The position numbers and the translations under genes are program-made. The notes under the pieces were generated by a model. It did not search any database. It worked only from the letters and a program-made list of their open reading frames with translations, and was not told the DNA's origin. Positions 22,755 through 37,418 of a DNA stretch of 64,000 nt are shown one piece after another. The stretch comes from Oculina patagonica (lineage: Eukaryota): NCBI RefSeq assembly GCF_052425735.1, contig NC_135768.1:16244001-16308000 (forward strand), in the 5' to 3' direction. Position 1 is the stretch's first letter; each line of letters begins with the position of its first letter.

Positions 22755-22933
22755 ATGGTAAGCCCTTCATTCAGAAAACTTAAAGTCTTTTATCTCAAAA
22801 AAATATTCTGATCATTTCTCTTACAGTAATATAGATACCCTCAACTGAAATTTGTTATCTTAATTCGTTCTCTCTTTGTAGATTTTCCTCACTTTGGTTG
22901 CATTAAACAGTTTCGTATGTGTCGTGATAAGAG
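22755..22933 (+). CDS. Gene A start codon and signal peptide exons
   Basis: ATG|gtaag, then IFLTLVALNSFVCVVIRG. Gene B has the same split-start arrangement. Confidence 0.65.
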
Positions 22934-25900
22934 GTAAGTTAAAAAGAATGCTTTGTCAGTATTTTTTTTTTTAAAAATATATACTTTAGAACGAGTAGGA
23001 AATGGGAGTCTTTCCTTTTCAATCCTTTTTGCAGTTTTTTATTTTGACGGCCGTACTTGCAAACAATAACTTTAACATTATTACACGAAATTTTTTTCGC
23101 GACGTCGAGAAAAAAGTTAATGAAATAGATGTTAAACAAACGCTCCAAAATCTTACGTTAATACTAAGATATCATAATGAGACTCCTATTAATCTAGCTT
23201 TTACATTTGGCTCACCAAAACAAAGGGTTGATATGCACCCTGAAAAATTTCTACGATTCCTAAAATTTAATTACATACGAAACAGAACCTAAAACGATCG
23301 AAAAGCACTATACCAAAGAAGTGAGTGCTTTTATGTAAAAAACCCAAAATAAATGCAGAATCTCCCCTAAATTTCCTGTTTTGGTCGTCTTCGAGGGGTT
23401 GCTTGCAGCGTTGTAATTCTTGCCATCATCTTCCCTGGTAAAAGGTTTTGTGGCAGAAAAATGAAGGGAATGGTAAGTTTATGTGCTTTGAGCTGGGGAT
23501 CTCACTTTGAACGTGACTTAACATTAAGACGCAATTGAAATTCTTATATAAAGTATTTCCTCGATGGAACGAGCTAGATGTATATCACTATAGGAAACTT
23601 TTTGCCCCTTTTTGGTTAATGAACAAATCTGTAGAAGGAAAGCTCAAAATATCATGTTAATTTCCTAAGGTGGAAATGGATCAGGGAGGTAATACTTAAC
23701 CAGTTTACAAACCGAGGATTACAAATGGAGGAGGAGGAGGAGGAGGAGGAGGGGAATGTAATACATTGAAATCCCAAAGAAGCCCTTGTTTTTCTTATTT
23801 TCAGACTTTCTCTCATTGCTTGCTGATTTTATCCCTTATTGATGGCATTAATTTTACCATGTATATTTTTAATATCAAAGAAATCGATACGCGTCTCGGA
23901 CAATTTCTGTAAATTTCTGCATGATTACTGGTGACCACTAAAATAATCCTAAATTGTACTCGGACCTTATAGTAATACCACATATAATTTTTGACATAGG
24001 TGTTTGGGCAGCGAACGACCCAGTCGCTGTATATCCACTTGGGAAAACACCAAAGGATGCAAGCCTGTGTAACAACACAGAGGCAGAAATGTTTCGCCGC
24101 GGGGATAAAACGTCTCGCTGGCCAGCAAATCTATTCCAACCAACGGGGGGAAGGACCATTCGAATAACAAATAACCACGGAAACTGGAAGGTAAAGTCCA
24201 TGTCTATCTTGGTTAAGATCAAACCTCTGCAAGCTGGGAGCCAGACAATTGTTCAATTTTCTGCACAAGGAAGGTTAAATCTCTTACTCTCATTACAAGA
24301 GAACTTCTTAACTTTCTCTATGTACTCAAAAAGGGACGGCGAGCCACTAAGTGCAAAGTTGATGTTGAATTCGAATGGAGGACAGTCCTTCACAGGGAAG
24401 TGGTACTCGGTTGGCGTTACCTACAATCACGTAACGGGCAATGTCACGCTCTATTCCGACAAAGGTGGATTCTACAAAGGTTTTCTGGGTATTTTGGAAA
24501 TAGAAGAGCCGGAATATGTCTATTTGGGCAATAACATGGAAACAGTGACAGGAGGCTCACCTCAACAACATTCATCAGGTTTCTATTTGGGCAAAATGGA
24601 GTGTTTCATGGTGTACCGAAGGAGTCTTCGCTTTTCTGAAATACAGCAAGCTATTAATTTATGCGAAAACCTACCCCAAGATATTGGCGAAGAAGATGAT
24701 CACAGTGATAAAGAAGGGGGTGGTAAGTTAAGTTACCTAATTGCGTATCTTTATGTCGAGTAGAAACTGGTTCTTATGCAACAGGTTTCGGCGCCAAACC
24801 GGATTCTTAAGAATGGGGAGGCTAGGAGTGTTGCTAGTCTCCCCTGGATGGGATACTAGTCCATCGCAGGGTTACACCAGTAATCTGTCAGGTTACCCCA
24901 ACAATTCGTCGGTACCCATTTATGCTCCAGGGGTGGGTGAGACACTGTGAGAGTAAAAGTGTCTTGCCCAAGAACACAACACAACACTAAGAACACAACA
25001 CTAAAACACAACAGTAACTCCGGGCAGGGCTCCAACCGGACCATTTGATCCAGAGTCCTGCACACAAGGCGTACATAGGCTTTTGGGTGAAGAGGAGAAG
25101 GGTGAATAAATAAGTTTCGTAATGCATGGGATCTTTGGTGCTGGATACCGTATCAGTTGAGAGCTTAACTATCGTGTTCTGTACCTCCAGTTTTGTGAAT
25201 GGGATTCCAGTCTATCGCGCTTTTAAGTGTTAAAACCTTCTGGGTTTTTTGCAGCTTGCCTTAAAAATTTTCATTGATGTTCCTGCGTCAAGAAGTTTAC
25301 TCTTAAGTTAAGTGACTTGCAAAAGACCACAACACAATGACTCGGCCAGCTCGATACCACTGCATTTACCATCAGGTTACTTCGTCTTCCAACAGTTGTT
25401 AACTTGCCGTTTCTAAATTTTACAGATACGTCGAATGGTGGCAGTCCTTTTATTTGCCCGCTTAAATCCAAGGACGATGATATTAACATCACAAGCTCAA
25501 ATGCAAGAACGACGGACTTTCTATCCACGCTAGTAACATCAAGGTATACTTTGACAAAGGACGTCACAATGAGCAGTTTCACTGTTTCTACATCAGGCAC
25601 AGTGAGTACGATTACAGATGATTTTTACTTCGATACAGTTACATTCACCAAGAACTTCACGAGCACGGAAGTGGTGACTATATCTAGCAGTCCTGCCTCA
25701 TCAAATGGATTTTACCTTAGTAAAACCACTCCTTTACTTCAACAAAACACAATGACGACTGCGAAGATGCATTCAGGCACAAGCTCCGTCATGAGCTACG
25801 TTACAACCTCAAACATAGAGATCGAAAGAACGACGGACTCTCCATCTACGAGCAGTCCAGCAACATCAAATAAATTTTACCTTAGTGCAATCACGCCGTC

Positions 25901-28900
25901 AATTCAACAAAATTCGACTGCGAAGAAGTATTCAGCGTCGGAGAAAATTCAGCCTACGAGATCATTTCAGCAAAGCTTGTCTAGTCACGGCAATTACTCC
26001 AAAGGTAACTGAAAAAATGCTATCGAATTGTTGTAGTTCAATTTGCTATTGTACCTGTCAAATGTCGTGTCACCTGTTCAGCATTTACGTATCTCCTATA
26101 CGAAACAAGTACAAAACAAGGAAAAATCTGTACGTAGTGACATCAAAGTTATTGAACATGTTGTTAAGTTGATGATCTAAACATTTTGACAGGCATGTTT
26201 CTCCAAAACTTAAACTTTTCGTTGTTTTATCGAAAAGTTTAACTTTGTTGCACAAAATTTCACATTTTAGATCTAGATTAATTTTAACAATTTTGAACAG
26301 CTTTGATTACTTTAGAGCCACTTTTGAAAAACGAATCAAAAGATTCAAGAAGGTGGAAAAAGATGGCGGGTGCTCGAAAATTATGACGTTATAGTGGTAA
26401 CAGATATTTACGGTTTTACAGATATAAAAACTTACTCCGCGTGATCCCGTGAGACATCACTCTTCGTTCTTTGCTCTTTTTGTTTACCTAGGTACTTCTT
26501 CATTCATGCAACGCGATAAACACTTTGCAAGCCCCTGAAGCTGGCATGCAGGCTCTAAGCAGAACATGCTAATGTATTTGTTTTTTTAGGTAACGTAAGT
26601 AATTACTCGTGGAGCGATTGGAGTTTGTGGTCTGCTTGTGATAAACCTTGCGGCGGCGGTCTTCGCGTGAGAACACGTGACTGCCTTGATAATTCAAGCA
26701 GAAAGAATGACGAAGAGTGCGATGGCATAAACAATGACGTAACAAACTGCAATATGCATTCGTGTCAAGGTATGATACGTGAGTGAAATATGTGGACCTT
26801 CCGGTCTTTCCATCATATTTATATCGAACTATTTAATTAAATCAGCAAAAATATTACCCGAACTAAGTCACTCGGTAATCACTCTAATGTTAAAGAGTTA
26901 ATTCATCAGTTGTCTTATATGAAGGGCTCCGAGTAGCTATAGGGGCTGGCTAGTGTCTTTGTGTTGGGGTGTAATTGGACAATTTAAAAACATTTTTCTG
27001 ACACAGTCCTTCTTTCCACCGAGTTGTATAAATGATCTCAGTGACAAGAAAATTGTTGGTAGAAAACCCGACAAAGCTTTAGAACATATTTTGCTTTTCA
27101 CTTGCTACCCATCTTCCGGGAGTGGTAATACTCTTAGTCAGAAGTAAAGTAAACTGGATTTTATCAAGCACTGATGAAGCATTCGACATAAAAAGACTTA
27201 AACTTATATCACATTATTTGACAATCAACTTTGTAGCTGTGCCCTTGACTGTGGGAGCAAGGCTAACACAAGAATTCTGGAATGACTCACTGCTCAACAA
27301 GAACAGCATTATGTTCAAAACTTTGGAATCTAAGATAAAAACCAACGTAAGTTTGATAAATTTTATAGCGGAGCTCCCAGCGGCCCGAAGGGCCGCAGAG
27401 CAGAGCACCATACACATAGAAAATTAACAGACCCATGCTTTTGGTTTTTCATGGTCATCATGGCTAGCGGCATGGCTCACGGGCGCGTGCGACGAAGTTG
27501 CCCCAACATGGCGGCCATACTCCAGAAATCGGTTTAAGGTTATGGTTAATGCCAGCTTACATCTTGGACATCCATGTCATGGTCAATCACATGACCATAT
27601 CGCGGGCTCACATATAGAACTTATCGAGGTCGAATGTTTTTTTTTAAGTTTGCCGCTGACCAAATAATGGTTTACATTGGATCGCGGGCTCAAGTGCTAT
27701 ATTTTTCTGTTATTGGTCAGTAAATTGGGAGCTCCGCTTTAAGGCTTGGCTAAATCTATTTATACAGTAAGCTTTAAGCTGGTGTAAGCGGTTGTCAATA
27801 TATAAACCTGCCAAGGTTGTATTCGTTTTAACAGGACGGCTATGTAACCTTGTTGAAATTTTTCACTGAGTCATTTATAGAGATGGAGATCGGTTATTTT
27901 TAGAGCTGGCAGTGTCAGCTGGTGCAATTTTGCATTGTTATAGTAGAAATGGGAAACCAAGCCCGTGGATAATGCAATGATCAATTTAATTTTAAATTTT
28001 TGACCAGACATGTGTAAAACTGAATCTAGATGACACAGGGAGCAGAGGAATTCGATTAGAATTGATCACTAAAATACGTCTTATCTCTTTGAAATGCACT
28101 CTTGCGTATATTTTATCCGTAATCAGCCCATTATGCGACCCAAAATGCACTCATTTGCGACGTTCTAATGCTTCGAATCTCAACAAAACCCGTACGATCG
28201 TTATGTTGAGATTCGAAGCATTAGAATGTCGCAAATGAGTGCATTTTGGGTCGCATAATGGGCTGATTACGGATAAAAGAGTATACGCAAGAGTGCATTT
28301 CAAAGAGGTGAGACGTATTTTAGTGATCAATTCTAACCGAACTCCTCTGCTCCCTGTGTAGATGATTGGAAAGCCCTTTGGCAAACTGTAACTATTATTA
28401 TTACGTATGAACGAGCAAGAGCTTTGGGTGGGAGGGAGGGAACAGAAAATCTTCGTGACGAAATGTCACACTACTGCTGTTTATCTCGTGTGAGAGCAAA
28501 AGACAGCGGTCAAATTTAGCAAGCACGTATCAAGATGCCAAAGTTAGCTCTGATTGGACGATTTTCAGGATTGTCACGTGAGACCATCCAAGGACAATGG
28601 TTGGATAATTTATCAAAGCTCATAGCTCTAAATAGAAACAAGAGTTGTTGATTAACTGAAATTTATTTCATGTGTTTAATAAAATGACGTTGCCATGGCA
28701 AGGTCAAATATCATGGGCACATGGTTGACATATCAAAATGTCCGCAAGGGATGAATAAACAGCTACTGAAAGTTTTAGCAATGTAGAGTAAATTCCATTT
28801 TTAAAATTTCGAAAAACCTTATGGGGTTGGCCCCCGTCGAGGGTTAAGAGATAAAAAAGTTCGATTTTAAGAAATGGCAGTGTCAGCTGACGAAATTTTT

Positions 28901-31900
28901 TCATTGTATAGTAGAAATAGGAAACTAAGTACGTGAATTGTTCTTTTTCATATGGTATTAAAGTTGAGCAAACTTGCCCTTTTGTAGATTGAAAAACTGT
29001 ATGCTGGCAATTCGACACTGGTAAATGTAATTCTGAATCACTGCAAGTAAGTATCCCTTTCTTGGTTTGCATCCAGCTTTATTAATAATCAGTTTAAATT
29101 ATTAACATATAATGTTAATTGAAATCAGGTATTGAAAATTGTTGTATACTTTTTTTATTCTTGTCTTACAGAAAAGGAAGTGTCATTGTTAATTTTACAG
29201 TGACATTTGAAGCAGTGAACTCTGATGAGATACTTAACTTCATGGAAAATACTGAAAAGGACGGAAGTTTAGCTGACTTGCAGTTGGCAGTTACCTCTGT
29301 CTCCCTTTCCGCCGTGGGAAGTAAGTATTTTCAGCTACAAGTTTACTTTAACACAGTGCTACTCTGGACTACGATAACGAACATACTCATTGCTATAAGT
29401 TCCTTATCATCGTATATCTAATATTTCGTCAAAACATGACGTGCCACAAAAAAAGGAATGTCGCTTCTTGTTGCACTCATTAATACTTTTATGTTGGTAT
29501 AAGCCAGGTGGAATGTAAGAAATGCCAGAGCTATCTACGTCGAAAGGTTATATTTTTCATTTTCATTTTATTAATTTATTCCATTCTTATATATAATTAT
29601 TAAGTACAGAGCAAAACAAATAGAAGAAAAGAAATGGAAAAGGACAAAATATAGATAGCTAATTTGATGCCCTTGATTTAAATTACAAAGGAGAGGAAGA
29701 AGTATGAATTAGTTAGTACTGAGCAAAATAAAAATGGTAAAGTGCTTTTAAAGGTTATAAGGGCCTATAGCGTTTATTTTAGGCCTAAGATCCTAAAGCT
29801 ATCTGAGATGCATCTGCCTTGGCACATGCCCATTACTTAGCCGCGAGTAGATTCGTTTTTGAACGAAACTAGAGCCAGAATACCAAATGCTTATTGTGAA
29901 ATAACATGAACAAAAATCAAAAACTCACAAATGTGATAGTTACAGGCCAAGAGTCAAAGACAGACACTTCTAGAATATGAACTTATTCTAATAATTGTAT
30001 TTCACCACAGTCCCAAATCAGACTCCCAGTATCACCAAGATTTACCTGACGAGTGTCAACAGTTTCAAAGTGTTCTGGACATCAGTCAGTGATGGGCCAA
30101 TCGATGGGTATCGGGTCGTTCACCGTCCCGTCACGGGAGGAGGGGAATGGAGTACCACTGCTGTTGACGCACAGACTACGTCACTGCATCAGGGAAACTT
30201 GTTGGAGGGAATAGTGTACAGGGTTAGAGTTATGGCGTTCAACAGCAGTGGTAATGGAATTCCAGGAGAGGCAAAAGAAATTAGGATGGAAGAAGGAGGT
30301 GGGTAAACTGGGTAAACTGGTCCGTTTATAGGAATAGCGTCTACGGACTAACAAGTTAGAAGCTACTTATAAAGCACAATAACGACAACACATCTGCTTC
30401 TACTTTTTGAATGACCACAAACTAGCGTTTTACCCACAGACCTTTAAGAACCATCTTGTACAGCATAACAAACAATACACAGGATACAACATAAAAGTAT
30501 GCTCAATATCTTGCATTTGATCATTTAAATGGTGATACACTAGGTTTTAATCCACAGGATCGAAGGTAAGAAGCTGTGCACCATATAAGCTGAGTAACAC
30601 ATGGCAGAACTGCTCGGTAGCCCTTATTTGAATGGTCAGACATAAATTAAAGTTTTATCGTCACCTTCAAAAGTTAAACTAGGGCTGCAATATACCCAAC
30701 AATGCTGTGAGTCTCAGTAATTATCTATATACGGTTAGATTCTGGATGTGCAATGTTGGATACGTCGAACACGAGACTGAATAATCAGAGTTTGGCTATT
30801 TTGTTTCTAGTGCCTGAGGTAGCGCCGTTCGTAAAGGTGTCAGATATGACAGACACCTCCTCCATATCAATTTCATGGACAGCCATACCAGAAGAATACG
30901 CAACGGGCAAGCTCCTTGGTTACCGCGTCATGTACACACCAGTAAAAGTAGCCGACAAACAACTAAAGGAGGGCGCAGGGTTAGTTACTATTGCCGTGGA
31001 TCATCCAGGAAATTTACATGCAAGTCTTACTGGATTGGAAAGCTACACTTCTTATAGCATTCAGGTGGCTGGTTTTACCGCTAAGGGAGATGGAATACCA
31101 TCCACTCACGTCATTGGAGGTAATGGTAAAACGCAAAATTGAGAAATGCCTGCAAATATATATTTACACTTTTTCCATTTTCTCTTGGAGTCCGGCAATC
31201 TTGCTGAGACGGTCGGTCTATTGGGTGATTCTTTATCTATTTCCCCTCTTATTGATGATCTTAAATTTCCAACAAGGCGAGAGGGTGTGCTTTTGGCCAA
31301 TTCAAGGAGGTATATAATGAAGATGAATTGTTCAACATGACACGAGCGTAGGGCAAAGAAAAAATCTGAGTCTCCGACGAGAATCGAACCCATGGCCTCC
31401 CAGATGCTGGTTGGGCGCTCTAACCAACTGAGCTACGAGAGACTCGTGGTGAGCTGAGCCATTCACTAGGTTAATCAATCGATTGATTATGTTTGGTTAT
31501 CTTCTTCCAACTTTGCAGTTTGAATGGGTTTGGCAGGGAATACCTGGAATTTTTTACTGAGAGAAAGGGGGTTATTATCTTACAGATCGCATATAAAATG
31601 GAATGGACCATATTGTTTGTGTGTTCTATTGGGAACCAACCATCATCTGATCATTGCCAAAAAATTTTCTTGTTTTTGTCTTCAACAGAAACCTGTCCCT
31701 GTCCCAAAGTCCTTTATACCAACTGGGCAGAGCTTCCTCCATACGTCACAAAACCTGCGGCAAATGATCAGCCACCACAAGGAATTCTTGGAACTATTGT
31801 AGAGGACATGCTATTAACGTCCTGCGGTATCTGCACAAAAGGTCACGGACGGACAACTTTGAGTTTCGAAAACAACGGAAAAGGAGGCACTCCTTACAAA

Positions 31901-34900
31901 AGAACCATAAACGCTGTTCGCGAGGATGTTGACCATCGAACCCAAGTTAGCTTTCCTGTTATAGGTGCAATGGATGACGACAAATTTCAAAAGGAATATG
32001 TCTTCGTTCCTGTAGTCGAATCTCCTGGAATCGTCTTTATAAGTGGGACAAGTAAGACAAGTGCCTTATCTGCAATTGTGCAATACCTCCCGTTGTGCAT
32101 GTTTTGTTTAGTTATGGCTTATGCGGCTGGTGTCATCATTTGGGCTCTGGTAAGTAATTTGCTATTTGGATTCACATTTGTTATCATGTATGTATCCAAC
32201 ATTTTCGTTTTGTGATATTTTATAGTTAGTGCATTTTTCTCACGCATCACTGAAACTGCCGATTCACCTAAATATAGGTCATAACAATTTGTGGTTTTCA
32301 TGAAACCAAATTGCTTTTTTGTGTTTACTTGAAAAGAAATAAGCTGTGTCGAGATTTAACGGCTAGAATCGTGTAGACATTTCCTTTTCTAAAGTACAAC
32401 AAGCCATGTAGCTGCATGGTGCATGCTGTTTCCATAACAAAAAGAGTAGTATTTGGTGCTCCCCTTGACGGGCTAATTACAACCAGTTTGTCCCTATACA
32501 CTTGAATGGAGAAAGGCTTGGAGGACGACCTGGTGCCTAAAGTGATTTGGTTACTTGATGATCAAGATAGCAAAATGTCTTGCTCAAGAGTACAGCATAA
32601 GGTCAATGGCCCAGCTCGAGGTCTGACCATCTGGATGTCAAGTCAAATGGACTCATCAAAAGACATCCCACTTTGCATACCCCTACAGAAACGGATCCAG
32701 AGGTGGGTCCTAAGGGGCCCGCTTCACCCGTGAAAAATGAGAAAAATTACGGGAAAATTTTTAAGTCAGTTAGGACCAGATCAGTCCAGGTACCCACCTT
32801 TTGATTCTGGGCTCCCAATCTGTTCGCAAGTACGGACACGCTACTGCTAAACGCAAGTTTACGGCTGTTCCAAGGATTCCTATAGAATGCGACCCTGACA
32901 GTTTACATTGTCTACTCTTAAAGCCTATATCTTAACATTTGCTATGTTTATTTGAATTTCTGTCTTATATAGGATTCGGATGGTTTCCCAAAGTCGTTCT
33001 CTAAAGGAGCTGGCGAAGGATTTTGGTTCTCGTTCATTTCCATGACTACTGTTGGGTATGGCATTAATTTATCATTTCTTTGTGGAACAATCGCCTGTGT
33101 CAGTAGAAGAAGTTAGAATGTAAGGTTTTATGCATGAAAGGTAGCCTGCGAGCAGGCTTGGCGAGGGCGAGCAGCATGCGCGAGTGGCGAGCGTAGGATA
33201 AGGCGGGGAGTGGCGCCAATAAAGTGACTCGCGGCTTCGCCGCTCCCGTGTAGCTCTCGTGCGTGCCCCAAGGTGAGCCTGCTCGCAGGCTACATGAAAT
33301 GGGGACTGTCATCTCCGTTAGGATTTATAACAGCCATGATCTTGTTTAGCTGGAAAACATACCAAGATAACAGGAGACTCGACACTTTACTGAACAGAGC
33401 TCAACTAATGACAGGAATTCATTAGAAAGTGAACGTAGTTATAGTGCTGTTTCGCGTTATGTTTACCTATTGATAAAATGTGTTAACCGAAGGTCTATTA
33501 CTTGCTGAATCCAAACGAGGAGTTGTTTATCGACTGGAAAAATTGAATGACAAATTGATTAAGACAACAATGCTTTTAAACAGCAAATATCGAATCATAT
33601 ATTCCACTAGTTACCCATTACGAATCTATACCCCCTAGGTACGGAGACAAAGTTCCTGTAGGAGTCTGTTCAAGGTTATTTACGGTTGCGTGGACCATAG
33701 CTGGCCTAGTAATGGCGTCTATACTTGTTGGAGTCATGGCTTCTTCTTTGACATTCAGAACTTTAGACAATGATATAATTTTATATGGAACAAAGGTACA
33801 CCAGTTATTCTTGAGAAAATAAAATTTTCATTTCCACCTGCTTTCAGTGTTACGTGTTGCATATTTTTACGTCCATCTTCGACATCCACTTTCGACGTGA
33901 TGTTTGAAATGAGCCAATCAAAACTGATGCATACCGGTGTAGGTCAGCAAATGAGCCCACAAGTTCAGAAGGCATGCTAGTGGATGTGATTGGCGGATTT
34001 CGATCCGTCTTGTTTGTTTAGTACGTCGAAAGTCGCTATGCACGTATCACTGAAAGGGGGTGTAGCTCTTCGTAACTAAGAGTATTGGTTCTTTCCCCCC
34101 TTGATGGTATGCTTGTCCATAAAAGGTGAAAACCCAGACGTTTGACCTAAAAATGGGCAGTACCAGTCTACACACTTTAGTGAAGAGAGGTACTGTGCAG
34201 TTAGTCGTGTACAAGTTCTAGTTAGCTGTAATTCTACTCGAGTGCTTGAAGCAGTTGCTATTGTTTTGGGGGCTATGGATATTGTTCCTGTTGTTTGTTC
34301 TATTGTTCTTTCGAAGGGTAGCAAGCCACAGGCGACCAGCCCGCAAGGTCCACTTTAATGGCTCGCTTTCCTTCGAGAAAACAACAGAGCAAACAACAGG
34401 AACAATATCCCTAGCCTTAAACGCAATAGTAGCTGCTACACTGTAGGACGACTAGCCTGAACTACAAGCTTATGGGAGCTGCTACACTAGCACTGTGACC
34501 TTTTTTTAACCTACAATACAACACGAGAATGTTGGGTTCGAAATTCTGACCTCCTCAGCCCATCCACCGCATTAGCCATGTGGCGCACGCACCTACTCAT
34601 CTACCTATATCACTGACAGAAATTATTTTAATTTTTTATCTAAAGGTGACGGCTCTAACAGACTCACCTGCTCACAAACTGGGAGTTAGGAGGAACGCTC
34701 TAGTCAGTGAGTACTGTGGATATGCTTTACTCTTACAAAGACTTAAGCATTTTCATAACTTTACCACTTCTTTACCTGTGTTTTTTCTGTGTGTGTTTCT
34801 CTGAATTAAAAAAAGCTAAGTTGCGGCTTGTCAGGAATGGTTAAAACTTTGTTGAAAAATAAAGAACAAAAAAACGTGAAAGTCCTAACAGGAACATTAG

Positions 34901-37418
34901 CTTCCATTTATCCTTGATAATTGCTTTCATTTGTAAGTATAGTCACGTTTTAAATTCTTGTGTATTTCTTTTAATTTTGTCAACTTCTTCTGTCAGTGCC
35001 ACAAGACACTTTATACGAAGCCTATGAAACTCTCGAGCGAGGTGAAGTCAAAGGACTTCTGCTTGATGCCTACGTTGCCGGAAGTCAAATGAAAGGCCTG
35101 CCTCAGCAACTGCGAGTCAAAGAAGTCATTAAGTTGTCCAAAGGAATTGGTGTTGTCCTATCAGGAGATGCTATCAGACTACAGAGCCGAGTTCGCGATT
35201 ATATCAGAAAGAATGCTGCACTGATAACTAAGATGATCCAAAACAGCACAACTCCATTAGAGGTAGATTTGTTTGTAAAAATTACTACTATGTTGTACGC
35301 TTGTCAATCAATCAATCAATCAATCAATAAACCAATCAATCTACTCGATCGATCAATTGAACGNNNNNNNNNNNNNNNNNNNNNNNNNNNNNNNNNNNNN
35401 NNNNNNNNNNNNNNNNNNNNNNNNNNNNNNNNNNNNNNNNNNNNNNNNNNNNNNNNNNNNNNNNNNNNNNNNNNNNNNNNNNNNNNNNNNNNNNNNNNNN
35501 NNTGGCAGGCTTTCAGACAGTCAGTCTGTGTAAGCAAGTAAGTCAGTTAGTTGTTCCGTCGGTCGGTCGGTCAGGCAGGCAGAACCTAAGATATTCATAT
35601 ATTAACAGTACTTAAGATATTTATATATTAATGTATTTATCTTCTTGTAAAATATTAAAAGAAAGAAAACTTTTACTCTTACGACCATTGAATTTTTACA
35701 TTCATACACTTGACTACTGCTATGACACATCTACGCAATAAAAAAACATAGGGGCTACAGTTTTTTCTGAACACGTAAATGGAAGAGAAATCTAGGAGAG
35801 AATCAGAGAATATTTTTCACAGGAAGTCTCTTCAGTATAAGAGTATCTTCACAAAATGTAGGTGATCATCATTTATGGACCATTTAAGATTTCTTATTTT
35901 CTTTCCAACGGCTTATAGGAGTTAACAAATGACGTCTGTATAAGGTCACTGTGTGCCATTTGTGAAAAACAAAACAAGGAATCACTTTCTCATTTTTTCC
36001 TAGCAACCAGAAAAGAGTGAAGCCGAGGAACAGGCAACAGAGTTGTTTTCTATCAATTCTTCATTATTTCACCAAACACTTTTGGTGCTAGCGAAAGCAC
36101 TGGGAGGCGCTGTATTTTGTGGACTTGTTTGGGAGCTCTTGCGCATAGGACTTGAACGAAGGAAAAAGACCTGGCATCCAGGTAAATTTGTTAGATCGTC
36201 AATCGCGTGTCGTAAAACCAAAGCCAAAGTTATCGCTCTGGCCTATCACAATAATCGCAGAAAATCCATTGAGCCAAACTTGAGGCAAAAACAGTCTCTT
36301 CTCTCTTTTAGCGGACATCTCGCGGCGTGTTTGTGTCCTTGGAGGTGTGGGTTTTTGGGGGGTGTTTTTTTACATGTAGCTGACGTGACGCGCGGGAAAA
36401 CGCGTGCGAGCGGATTACGATTGGTTTTGGTTTTACTTCTGATTGGTTGGAAAGTGGCGCGGCTTTTTAAACATTCACTAAGCATAGTGATGTAAAACCA
36501 AAGCAAACGCAAATTATTTTCGACACTCATGTGAAAATTGATCTAGTTTTGTGTTGTACTTTTACAAACTTTTTACCTTTGTCTTATCAAGTTGATAAAT
36601 TTCGGTGTTTCGATTCGTAAACACCACGAGGGTCGGAAAAATTATCCAATAAATTTAAACTTATTTACTTTACCTGCAAACATTCTACCAATCTAAAGGT
36701 AGTTACTCAAACCTGTAATGGTAACCTTAATTTGGGGAGCGGAAATCTGACCGCTTTATAAAACTTGACCGTTTAATACAGGTCTCTGGTGTAGTGGAAC
36801 TACAATCTTGGACAAAACTGTTGAAACACTTTTAAGCCACTAATTTAGCTAACAGAGTTCAGTTTTGCAACCCCCCCCTCCCCCCATTTCAATGTTGTTA
36901 ATGCTGTAGTGTTTTCAAAACAAAGCCACAAACCCCAAGAAACGGCAACATTGAGTAGTGGGGGGGGGGGGGGAGAGGGGGTAAAATATTTTTACCCGCT
37001 TGCAGGTCAGGTCATCTGTGAAAAATGCGTGAAGTACGTTTTTATCAACTAGTTTTGTACAAGATTGTAGTGCAGAGAAAATATCATTCAACTAGGCTCT
37101 GATGTGGATTTTGTATCATCAGATCAGTAGCGGGGCATCTGCTGACGTAGTGCTAAATTCTCAAACCCAACAGTAAACGAAAGGTTTAAAAGATGTGTTA
37201 ACATTTTTTTTATTTTTAACATTTATTTAGGACACCAACCGAAAGGGGATGCCAGCCCAAAGACGATACGAAAAGAGTTGCAAGAACCTGTTCAACATTT
37301 TTATGACAATTTCCGACAAGTTTACGTGCACTTAAGACATAAATATAGCAAAGAGCTACAGCAATTTGGTCAACAACGACCGCTTGTGAAGAAGACTCGA
37401 AAAGTTGCTTGGACATGA
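22755..37418 (+). CDS. Gene A: GluR0/AvGluR1-like ligand-gated channel with K+ filter (TTVGYGD) fused to a LamG-mucin-TSP1-SEA-FN3x2 ectodomain, 1281 aa
   Basis: Exons 22755-22757, 22882-22933, 24000-24722, 25426-26004, 26590-26769, 27237-27346, 28988-29046, 29172-29320, 30011-30298, 30811-31119, 31689-32149, 32973-33055, 33639-33795, 34646-34706, 34997-35262, 36004-36181, 37231-37418. All GT-AG with compatible phases; sum 3846 nt. AATAAA at 37603. Exon structure mirrored by gene B. Confidence 0.88.
24000..24722 (+). CDS. Gene A LamG-like domain exon
   Basis: PVAVYPL...SMSILVKIKP...GKWYSVGVTYNHVTGNVTLY...YLGKMECFMVYRRSL; phase 1-1. Confidence 0.85.
25426..26004 (+). CDS. Gene A Ser/Thr-rich mucin-like stalk exon
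   Basis: S/T-rich ORF with an internal duplication (SSPASSNGFYLS / SSPATSNKFYLS); phase 1-1. Confidence 0.8.
26590..26769 (+). CDS. Gene A thrombospondin type-1 repeat exon
   Basis: WSDWSLWSACDKPCGGGLRVRTRDC...C...CNMHSC. Confidence 0.9.
27237..29320 (+). CDS. Gene A SEA domain (three exons)
   Basis: FWNDSLLNKNSIMFKTLESKI | IEKLYAGNSTLVNVILNHCK | KGSVIVNFTVTF. Confidence 0.8.
28034..28358. mobile_element. Fully palindromic MITE with a 7-bp TSD (P-element-like)
   Basis: CA...TG ends, two long near-perfect inverted arms, TSD tagatga at 28027-28033 and 28359-28365. Confidence 0.75.
30011..31119 (+). CDS. Gene A fibronectin type III domains (two exons)
   Basis: SFKVFW...IDGYRV...LLEGIVYRVRVMAFNSSGNG and SISISW...GKLLGYRV...LTGLESYTSYSIQVAGFTAKGDG. 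Confidence 0.9.
31320..31472 (-). mobile_element. tRNA-derived repeat, same family as 48740-49100
   Basis: Reverse complement contains gtagctcagttggttagagcgccc...gggttcgattc. Confidence 0.6.
31689..32149 (+). CDS. Gene A solute-binding lobe S1 plus first transmembrane helix
   Basis: LPPYV...GILGTIVEDML...YVFVPVVESPGIVFI, then hydrophobic LPLCMFCLVMAYAAGVIIWAL. Confidence 0.8.
32973..33795 (+). CDS. Gene A K+ channel pore (pore helix, filter, inner helix), two exons
   Basis: FPKSFSKGAGEGFWFSFISMTTVG|YGDKVPVGVCSRLFTVAWTIAGLVMASILVGVMASSLT. Confidence 0.93.
34250..34440. repeat. Imperfect inverted repeat, probably an old MITE
   Basis: ggatattgttcctgttgtttg ... caaacaacaggaacaatatcc arms. Confidence 0.55.
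34646..35262 (+). CDS. Gene A solute-binding lobe S2 (two exons)
   Basis: VTALTDSPAH...YEAYETLERGEVKGLLLDAYV...KGIGVVL resembles the second lobe of type-2 periplasmic binding proteins and iGluR S2. Confidence 0.75.
36004..37418 (+). CDS. Gene A last transmembrane helix (M4-like) and cytosolic tail
   Basis: TLLVLAKALGGAVFCGLVWELL followed by basic RRKK; last exon ends KTRKVAWT*. Confidence 0.75.

Follow-up and report, generated by a model that had tools for sequence, protein, structure and literature searches.

In a 64,000-nucleotide (nt) window of the genome of the coral Oculina patagonica (RefSeq assembly GCF_052425735.1, contig NC_135768.1, positions 16,244,001 to 16,308,000), we identified a single gene of 17 exons that encodes a multi-pass membrane protein of about 1290 amino acids (aa). 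The gene lies on the forward strand at positions 22755-37418 of the window. Its product joins an adhesion-type ectodomain to a channel module resembling the bacterial glutamate receptor GluR0, in which a two-lobed ligand-binding domain (halves S1 and S2) is split by a pore carrying an intact K+ filter signature. The protein clearly belongs to the wider superfamily of ionotropic glutamate receptors (iGluRs) and GluR0. We propose that it probably acts as a ligand-gated, hyperpolarising K+ channel, with the ectodomain localising, anchoring or tuning the channel, or presenting or capturing its cue.

A 17-exon gene encodes a modular ectodomain and a channel

The gene model is based on canonical splice sites, frame compatibility and homology. 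All 17 exons are bordered by AG and GT and splice into a single open reading frame (ORF) that ends with a stop codon at 37416-37418. Splicing to the acceptor of exon 4 at 25426 yields a product of 1281 aa, reproducing the in-frame product of our first-pass annotation of the locus; with an equally good acceptor at 25396, it is 1291 aa. From N- to C-terminus the protein comprises a signal peptide, a LamG domain, a Ser/Thr-rich stalk, a thrombospondin type 1 repeat (TSP1), a SEA domain, two fn3 domains, S1, the transmembrane helix M1, the pore, M3, S2, M4 and a helical tail, and hydropathy analysis of the spliced protein detects the signal peptide together with M1, M3 and M4. The closest protein matches to the gene come from stony corals, among them a Stylophora ortholog (RefSeq model P0167; LOC111339520).

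Exon 1 (22755-22757) is predicted to consist of the ATG alone, followed directly by the donor GTAAGC, and its phase fits exon 2 (22882-22933). The latter has AG/GT borders and is predicted to encode a hydrophobic signal peptide (residues 2-20; hydropathy peak 2.18); signal-like peptides also begin the full-length homologues. We rejected an alternative start at 23002, in a signal-like ORF, because none of its in-frame donors fits the phase of the LamG exon. A comparable pair of ATG-only and signal exons was not found upstream of the tandem paralog described below.

Exons 3 to 5 each encode one module of the ectodomain and are flanked by introns in phase 1-1. Pfam searches, run on single exons rather than on the whole spliced protein, identified a Laminin_G_3 (concanavalin-like) domain in exon 3 (24000-24722; E 3.8e-6) with a score of 27.6 bits, exactly at the cut-off, and the same exon matches the LamG domain of P0167 by tblastn (E 2.5e-13). 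Exon 4 (25396 or 25426 to 26004) encodes a mucin-like stalk of 204 aa with 37% Ser+Thr, and both of its acceptors keep the frame. Exon 5 (26590-26769) encodes the thrombospondin repeat (Pfam TSP_1, E 3.8e-11, 43.4 bits).

The SEA domain is split over three exons, which align to the Pfam SEA regions of the homologues P0006 (Nematostella XP_048580690), P0007 and P0167. Exon 6 (27237-27346; donor GTAAGT) matches residues 394-429 of P0006 by tblastn, within the Pfam SEA match of that protein; we chose the acceptor at 27237, and the one at 27138 is likewise in frame. A phase-0 splice from 27346 to 29172 leads to an immediate stop, and this was resolved by a 59-nt mini exon, exon 7 (28988-29046), which we located through the N-terminus of P0167 and which is the sole AG..GT solution with the right phases. 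Exon 8 (29172-29320) completes the domain, as judged by its tblastn matches to the SEA parts of P0006 and P0167, and contains an autoproteolysis-type motif, GSVIV, at the site corresponding to the G-S-V-V-V cleavage motif. Two fn3 domains follow in exon 9 (30011-30298; Pfam fn3 E 1.1e-8) and exon 10 (30811-31119; E 1.6e-10), both in phase 1-1 and scoring 35.6 and 41.5 bits; exon 10 is also covered by spliced contigs.

The ectodomain is about 810 aa long, and the N-terminal region comprising signal peptide and ectodomain (827 aa) contains 15 N-glycosylation sequons. Of the domains that the first-pass annotation had led us to expect in Pfam, Laminin_G_3, TSP_1, two copies of fn3 and Ion_trans_2 were recovered; S1 and S2 were without a Pfam match, and SEA had none on the separate exons, the domain being divided among three. 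An LIVBP-type (ANF_receptor-type) N-terminal domain was not detected by Pfam in the window protein or in 13 homologues.

All boundaries between ectodomain modules, and the boundary between fn3 and S1, are phase-1 introns, which by intron phase is the classic pattern of exon shuffling. Because the modules are phase-1 shuffling exons, very different ectodomains can occur among paralogs and orthologs: across the family we found fn3 arrays of 2 to 11 domains, TSP1, SEA, LamG, pentraxin, EGF, CUB with Ig, PAN and F5/8-C modules.

Transcript contigs join the ectodomain to the channel

We compared positions 30700-36300 of the window with contigs assembled from four sequencing runs of three studies. 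We took these runs to be RNA because the contigs cover exons, have zero depth in unique (non-repeat) parts of introns and skip the introns at the predicted GT..AG sites. Joints were found at 32149/32973, 33055/33639, 33795/34646, 34706/34997 and 35262/36004. One contig of 472 nt (X16 record 1) joins the fn3 exon (30809-31117) directly to the S1 exon (31687-31822), indicating that ectodomain and channel are part of one transcript. A second contig, of 1340 nt (X8 record 21), runs without interruption from S1 through M1, pore, M3, S2 and M4 into the tail, extending 157 nt past 36182. The single-gene fusion proposed in the first-pass annotation is thus borne out by the fn3-S1 joint, and the two junctions it had singled out for checking, 31119/31689 and 33055/33639, have canonical splice sites and are both joined in RNA-type contigs. 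Identity between the contigs and the window is 91-97%. Since the best paralog in the genome is only 55% identical at the protein level, we attribute the contigs to close relatives or divergent alleles, not to a paralog.

An assembly gap interrupts the noncoding intron 15 (35263-36003): a run of N occupies 35364-35502, 101 nt past the exon-15 donor (35262). The Stylophora ortholog, which shares 64% identity with the 464-aa channel module, stays colinear through the junction of exons 15 and 16, with neither missing nor extra residues. Because of this colinearity, and because contigs of all four runs join 35262 to 36004, we conclude that no coding sequence is lost in the gap.

The arrangement recurs outside the window. 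In independent gene models from Nematostella, Exaiptasia, Acropora, Oculina, Montipora, Hydra and Hydractinia, S1 is immediately preceded by fn3, Ig/CUB or other extracellular modules.

The channel module has an iGluR-type fold and is closest to GluR0

The channel module is encoded by the last seven exons. Exon 11 (31689-32149) encodes the S1 half of the ligand-binding domain, with four conserved Cys, and M1; it has 292 homologues at E<=1e-3, aligns to bacterial GluR0-type S1 in hhalign and is covered by spliced contigs. Exon 12 (32973-33055) encodes a pre-pore segment and the pore helix up to TTVG, and exon 13 (33639-33795) the remaining filter residues YGD and the inner helix M3. S2 begins in the 61-nt exon 14 (34646-34706), which was located through homologues, matches residues 493-519 of P0167 and is bounded by the contig joints 33795/34646 and 34706/34997. 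Its main part, including an invariant Asp, lies in exon 15 (34997-35262; 73% identity to P0167). Exon 16 (36004-36181) supplies the S2-M4 linker and M4, with 53% identity to residues 611-696 of P0167, a hydropathy peak and, in the ortholog, a predicted helix at 370-406. Exon 17 (37231-37418) encodes a cytoplasmic helical tail and the stop; it matches residues 670-716 of P0167 by tblastn and carries a tail motif conserved in the family.

We computed the fold and the sequence profiles from the 64%-identical Stylophora ortholog and other homologues, with a family alignment of 28 channel modules. With a mean predicted local distance difference test (pLDDT) score of 84.9, the AlphaFold2 (AF2) model of the Stylophora module contains two alpha/beta lobes, the helices M1, M3 and M4, a pore helix and a long helix at the C-terminus. 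Foldseek aligned this model over about 450 columns to ligand-binding and transmembrane domain (LBD-TMD) structures of GluA1-4, GluK2, GluD2 and GluN1/2B in the PDB (E 3e-13 to 1e-11, probability 1.00, 12-17% identity), and we conclude from this alignment that the binding-protein fold of S1/S2 and the iGluR-type domain order are present. The order S1, M1, re-entrant pore loop, M3, S2, M4 was found consistently by the spliced protein, hydropathy, AF2 and Foldseek. In Pfam, exon 13 alone scores 14.8 bits against Lig_chan (PF00060; cut-off 30.8), and homologues score 18-38 bits, two of them (P0007, 34.3; P0164, 38.4) above the cut-off.

By sequence, the affinities are not those of the fold, and three comparisons place the module next to bacterial proteins. 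The best PDB match of an S2-only profile is the ligand-binding core of GluR0 (Slr1257; 1IIT/1II5, E 4.5e-4), followed by bacterial amino-acid-binding proteins and a Nostoc GluR0 homologue; eukaryotic iGluR cores were not found in this search even at E<=10. In a search of 5.8 billion proteins, the cnidarian matches are followed by bacterial proteins combining SBP_bac_3, Lig_chan-Glu_bd, Lig_chan and Ion_trans_2 (E 4e-34 to 8e-19; 305-385 aa, plus one of 740 aa), and plain K+ channels come after these at about 1e-9. Finally, hhalign aligned the family to 15 bacterial GluR0-type proteins over 290 columns spanning S1, pore and S2, with a probability of 99.95% and E 6.9e-38. As all three favour GluR0-type proteins, the label GluR0-like is justified. 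Together with AF2 and Foldseek, the S2 profile and hhalign support the initial assignment of an S1/S2 clamshell split by a K+ pore and followed by M4.

The pore carries an intact K+ filter signature

The filter TTVGYGD is intact in the window protein, as first annotated, and is split by intron 12 between exons 12 and 13. Pfam Ion_trans_2 scores 24.3 bits on exon 12 (cut-off 22.5), 24.0 bits on exon 13 and 42-52 bits in homologues, and the pore profile picks up genuine K+ channels (KvAP, Shaker, Kv4, KcsA) with E about 1e-12. Across 28 family members G-Y-G is at least 90% conserved and the next Asp is invariant. Nineteen residues beyond the filter Asp there is a Gly, at what we take to be the position of the KcsA hinge glycine. 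The iGluR signature SYTANLAAF is absent: M3 contains ...AGLVMASILVGVMASSLT, and the family consensus is also without the motif. The spliced protein and Pfam therefore agree with the initial claim that both this motif and an LIVBP-type N-terminal domain are missing.

Given the N-terminal signal peptide and an extracellular S1, the pore loop and tail are expected on the cytoplasmic side. The inverted pore of the first-pass annotation thus finds support as a consequence of the predicted topology. After M4, exon 17 encodes a conserved motif in a long cytoplasmic helix, modelled by AF2 as about 50 residues, which could serve in assembly or regulation. If intron 12 is retained (33055/33056), the read-through frame still spells TTVGYG and reaches a stop after 17 more codons, so GYG is independent of this splice and the rest of the pore depends on it.

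The binding pocket departs from that of glutamate receptors

In the set of 15 bacterial GluR0-type proteins, the S1 motif contains an invariant Thr and an invariant Arg, the latter being the carboxylate-binding residue of GluR0 and iGluRs. The equivalent column in the cnidarian family is variable (Q in nine, D in seven, V in three, N in two, others, and R once), and hhalign places an Asp there in the window protein. The ten residues around this column vary strongly between paralogs. In S2, an Asp is invariant in 29 of 29 sequences and aligned to the Asp of the corresponding GluR0 motif, a position that we take to be that of the amino-group-binding acidic residue. Four conserved Cys (CxC...CxxC) at the start of the cnidarian S1 have no counterpart in the bacterial set and could form disulfide staples. 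By these patterns of conservation the clamshell appears to be under selection. Its ligand, which may vary from one paralog to another, much as in insect ionotropic receptors (IRs), is probably something other than a plain alpha-amino acid. Because the carboxylate-binding Arg of GluR0 is not conserved, identity as a glutamate receptor should not be assumed.

Comparison with known receptors

GluR0 is a bacterial receptor with two transmembrane helices and a K+-selective pore carrying TXVGYG (PMC12332018, PMC3483616, PMC12226733). The coral protein shares with GluR0 (Slr1257, Synechocystis) and the bacterial GluR0-type proteins of about 350 aa a binding-protein domain split by an inverted TXVGYG pore, homology over the whole module, a pre-pore N..F motif and the S2 Asp. 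It differs from GluR0 in having M4, a cytoplasmic helix and a large ectodomain, all three absent from the bacterial receptor, and in being encoded by 17 exons. The S1 Arg, invariant in the bacterial set, is not conserved in cnidarians, and the cnidarian S1 has the four extra conserved Cys.

The nearest animal comparison is the rotifer receptor AvGluR1, whose architecture includes an LIVBP-type N-terminal domain and whose ligand-binding core has been solved. AvGluR1 keeps the same K+ signature, prefers K+ and resembles bacterial iGluRs (PMC12332018, PMC12226733); it is described as the one animal iGluR with this signature, in an otherwise standard eukaryotic iGluR architecture (PMC12332018, PMC3483616, PMC12226733). 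Both it and the coral protein are animal iGluR-type subunits with M4 and a K+ signature. AvGluR1, however, is gated by amino acids and has the standard iGluR architecture, and its ligand-binding core is absent from the S2 profile matches at E<=10.

Canonical iGluRs (AMPA, kainate, delta, NMDA, epsilon and lambda) and insect IRs have the same LBD-TMD fold and the same S1-M1-P-M3-S2-M4 order as the coral protein, with weak Pfam Lig_chan similarity that exceeds the cut-off in some homologues. The coral protein differs from canonical iGluRs in having a K+ filter instead of a Q/R/N pore loop, in lacking SYTANLAAF and an LIVBP-type domain, and in its low identity to the structures (12-17%). Like the insect IRs, the family is greatly expanded and has partly lost the canonical binding triad.

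The ectodomain modules are those common in transmembrane mucins, adhesion receptors and receptor phosphatases such as PTPRQ, sidekick and contactin: fn3 arrays, TSP1, SEA with a G-S-V-V-V-type motif, LamG, Ig and CUB. None of these proteins is known to have a channel module, and family members named after PTPRQ, sidekick or contactin carry misleading automatic carry-overs from the ectodomain.

A model for gating and its alternatives

We favour a model in which four subunits, the general number for this type of pore, would form a K+-selective pore whose filter, like that of GluR0 and iGluRs, enters from the cytoplasm. The S1/S2 clamshell would close on an extracellular ligand and pull M3 open, and K+ would then leave the cell and hyperpolarise it. 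The variable ectodomain would most likely place, anchor or tune the channel, or present or capture the cue, rather than gate the pore itself. On this model the family would represent an expanded repertoire of inhibitory channels serving chemoreception or recognition.

Several points weigh against this model. The GYG filter is no guarantee of K+ selectivity, which is predicted here from the signature, and the clamshell could be ligand-free, given the lost canonical Arg and the variable pocket loop. An S1-only profile found no match in the PDB even at E<=10, and on the S1, S2, M4 and tail exons Pfam recognised nothing, of which the S1 and S2 part counts here. The fold was predicted for the Stylophora ortholog and not for the window protein, and members of the family are so far sequences and models. 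As for the gene itself, the contigs that join its exons represent relatives or divergent alleles from runs that we presume to be RNA, and exons 1-8, which are without transcript support, rest on splice logic and homology, exons 1-2 being putative.

One alternative is that the ectodomain is the gate: binding of LamG, TSP1 or fn3 to a cell, matrix or microbe, or tension transmitted through the stalk and the cleavable SEA domain, would pull on S1 and open the K+ pore. The last fn3 domain runs into S1 without a linker, the SEA domain has a GSVIV cleavage-type motif of the sort found in mucins and receptors that are mechanically labile, the family has lost the canonical ligand-binding Arg, and adhesion modules build ectodomains throughout the family. 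We nevertheless consider this mechanism unlikely. It is speculation from the kinds of domain present. The ectodomain varies freely between paralogs on a conserved channel module, and an S2 Asp that never varies, in a clamshell that is conserved, speaks for a binding site for small molecules. Moreover, some family members of 479-556 aa (P0196, P0184, P0192) have little or no ectodomain. Because such members exist, the channel module likely gates on its own, and we rank ectodomain-driven gating lower.

It is also doubtful that the protein is no gated receptor at all, and instead a constitutive K+ leak localised by its ectodomain or an adhesion or scaffold protein with a nonconducting channel module. 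Pocket residues vary and the Arg is lost, large and fast-duplicating families often include non-functional members, and databases name members of this family after adhesion proteins, all of which would suit such a role. Yet both Anthozoa and Hydrozoa have kept the K+ signature, hinge Gly, pre-pore motif and S2 Asp of the family, and this conservation points to selection on both conduction and the clamshell. In addition, the ORF is intact and spliced transcripts were found in four runs.

Lastly, it is very improbable, and already largely refuted, that the gene model reads two neighbouring genes, one for an adhesion protein and one for a channel, as one: intron 10 does hold an in-frame ATG with a short hydrophobic stretch (31493-31688, upstream of the S1 exon, in an open frame at 31487-32212) from which a channel could start, and the Stylophora model P0167 is indeed an erroneous tail-to-head merger of two tandem genes, but X16 record 1 joins the fn3 and S1 exons at 31119/31689, the introns match in phase 1, the S1 exon begins at a canonical acceptor, and independent models in Nematostella, Exaiptasia, Acropora, Oculina, Hydra and Hydractinia put fn3 or other modules directly before S1. 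Separately, the intron-10 ATG could in principle start a channel-only isoform; no contig among those compared supports one, and short family members exist in other species.

The gene belongs to a large cnidarian family

A phmmer search with the S1-M1 exon against 1.8 billion representative sequences returned 292 proteins at E<=1e-3, and all of those that we looked up are cnidarian. Homologues occur in corals, anemones and hydrozoans, amounting to hundreds of database entries across Cnidaria. The ESM Atlas clusters nearest to the module have 54-154 members each and are labelled Cnidaria, and the O. patagonica genome holds 37 or more matches to the S1 exon, most of them clustered in tandem on C10, C11 (the contig of the window), C13 and C14. 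To date, only Cnidaria have yielded members of the family.

Among AlphaFold DB clusters, cnidarian entries come first, then one entry, A0A7I8VUK0, and then algal and protist iGluR-like proteins. A0A7I8VUK0 (DgyrCDS8581, 669 aa), presumably from the annelid Dimorphilus by its entry name, matches S1-pore-S2 over residues 336-666 with 21% identity (E 5e-19) and seems to end without an M4. Possibly it is a relative of the GluR0-like type from Bilateria, likewise with an N-terminal extension.

The first-pass annotation had called the architecture one without a characterised precedent. No account of a cnidarian iGluR-type channel that carries a K+ filter or an fn3/SEA ectodomain turned up in a search of the open-access literature, and two broad metazoan iGluR phylogenies mention no cnidarian group with a K+ filter, so that the family is apparently undescribed. 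The gene is not a singleton but one member of a large cnidarian family with varied ectodomains. In the source databases members are called uncharacterized, PTPRQ, sidekick-1/2, contactin-3-like or serine-rich adhesin. Naming problems affect the RefSeq entries P0006, P0032, P0068, P0029, P0164 and P0170, whose names derive from fn3 though each carries a K+-channel pore. The family thereby flags a systematic RefSeq misannotation (PTPRQ, sidekick, contactin).

A tandem paralog and other features of the window

A tandem paralog with an S1 55% identical to that of the first gene begins at about 43051 on the + strand and continues beyond 64000, running off the window. On the same strand it shows two LamG domains (43135-43806 and 45235-45873), a TSP1 domain (49442-49588), SEA segments (50188-50295 and 53538-53684), two fn3 domains (59195-59476 and 60581-60889) and S1 (62396-62854). 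Assembly gaps interrupt it at 50489-51015, 51395-51528 and 55767-55904. Stylophora has the same tandem gene pair, and it is the 3' part of the first gene and the 5' part of the second that its RefSeq model P0167 merges.

Within the introns of the first gene, positions 31368-31443 on the - strand (intron 10) were recognised as a tRNA-Ala (AGC) by ARAGORN and by the Rfam tRNA model (35.3 bits). RNA-type contig depth there reaches tens of thousands, and the sequence may be a real tRNA gene or the tRNA-derived head of a short interspersed nuclear element (SINE). Very high contig depth was also seen at 33879-34065 and 34253-34439 in intron 13 and at 36123-36300 at intron 16. The segment 33879-34065 is a dispersed repeat (41 genome matches scored of 899 first-look candidates, 79-90% identity), and opposite-strand contig joints at 34250-34459 suggest an inverted repeat. 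We therefore ruled out high intron depth as a sign of expression of this gene, as it arises from the tRNA-Ala sequence and dispersed repeats.

Implications for glutamate receptor evolution and cnidarian sensing

That animal glutamate receptors originated when a K+ pore was fused to a binding protein is a model of long standing with very few examples, namely bacterial GluR0 and rotifer AvGluR1. The family described here adds a whole animal family in which the K+ signature is kept, the sequence is closest to bacterial GluR0, M4 is present and adhesion modules stand in place of the LIVBP domain. It may show how animal glutamate receptors arose, and the order of events (gain of M4, gain of an N-terminal domain, loss of K+ selectivity) becomes testable.

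More tentatively, these proteins might be lineage-specific recognition receptor-channels of cnidarians, coupling cues from cells, matrix, microbes, symbionts or dissolved chemicals to a hyperpolarising K+ conductance by way of shuffled ectodomains and diversifying pockets. They might at the same time be a living intermediate of iGluR evolution, a GluR0-type K+ channel that has M4, has no LIVBP domain and has not lost K+ selectivity; we hold this combined view as a possibility rather than an expectation. If the channels conduct K+, they would constitute a new class of fast inhibitory or sensory receptors in the sister group of Bilateria and, if so, could bear on how corals sense microbes, symbionts, neighbours and settlement cues.

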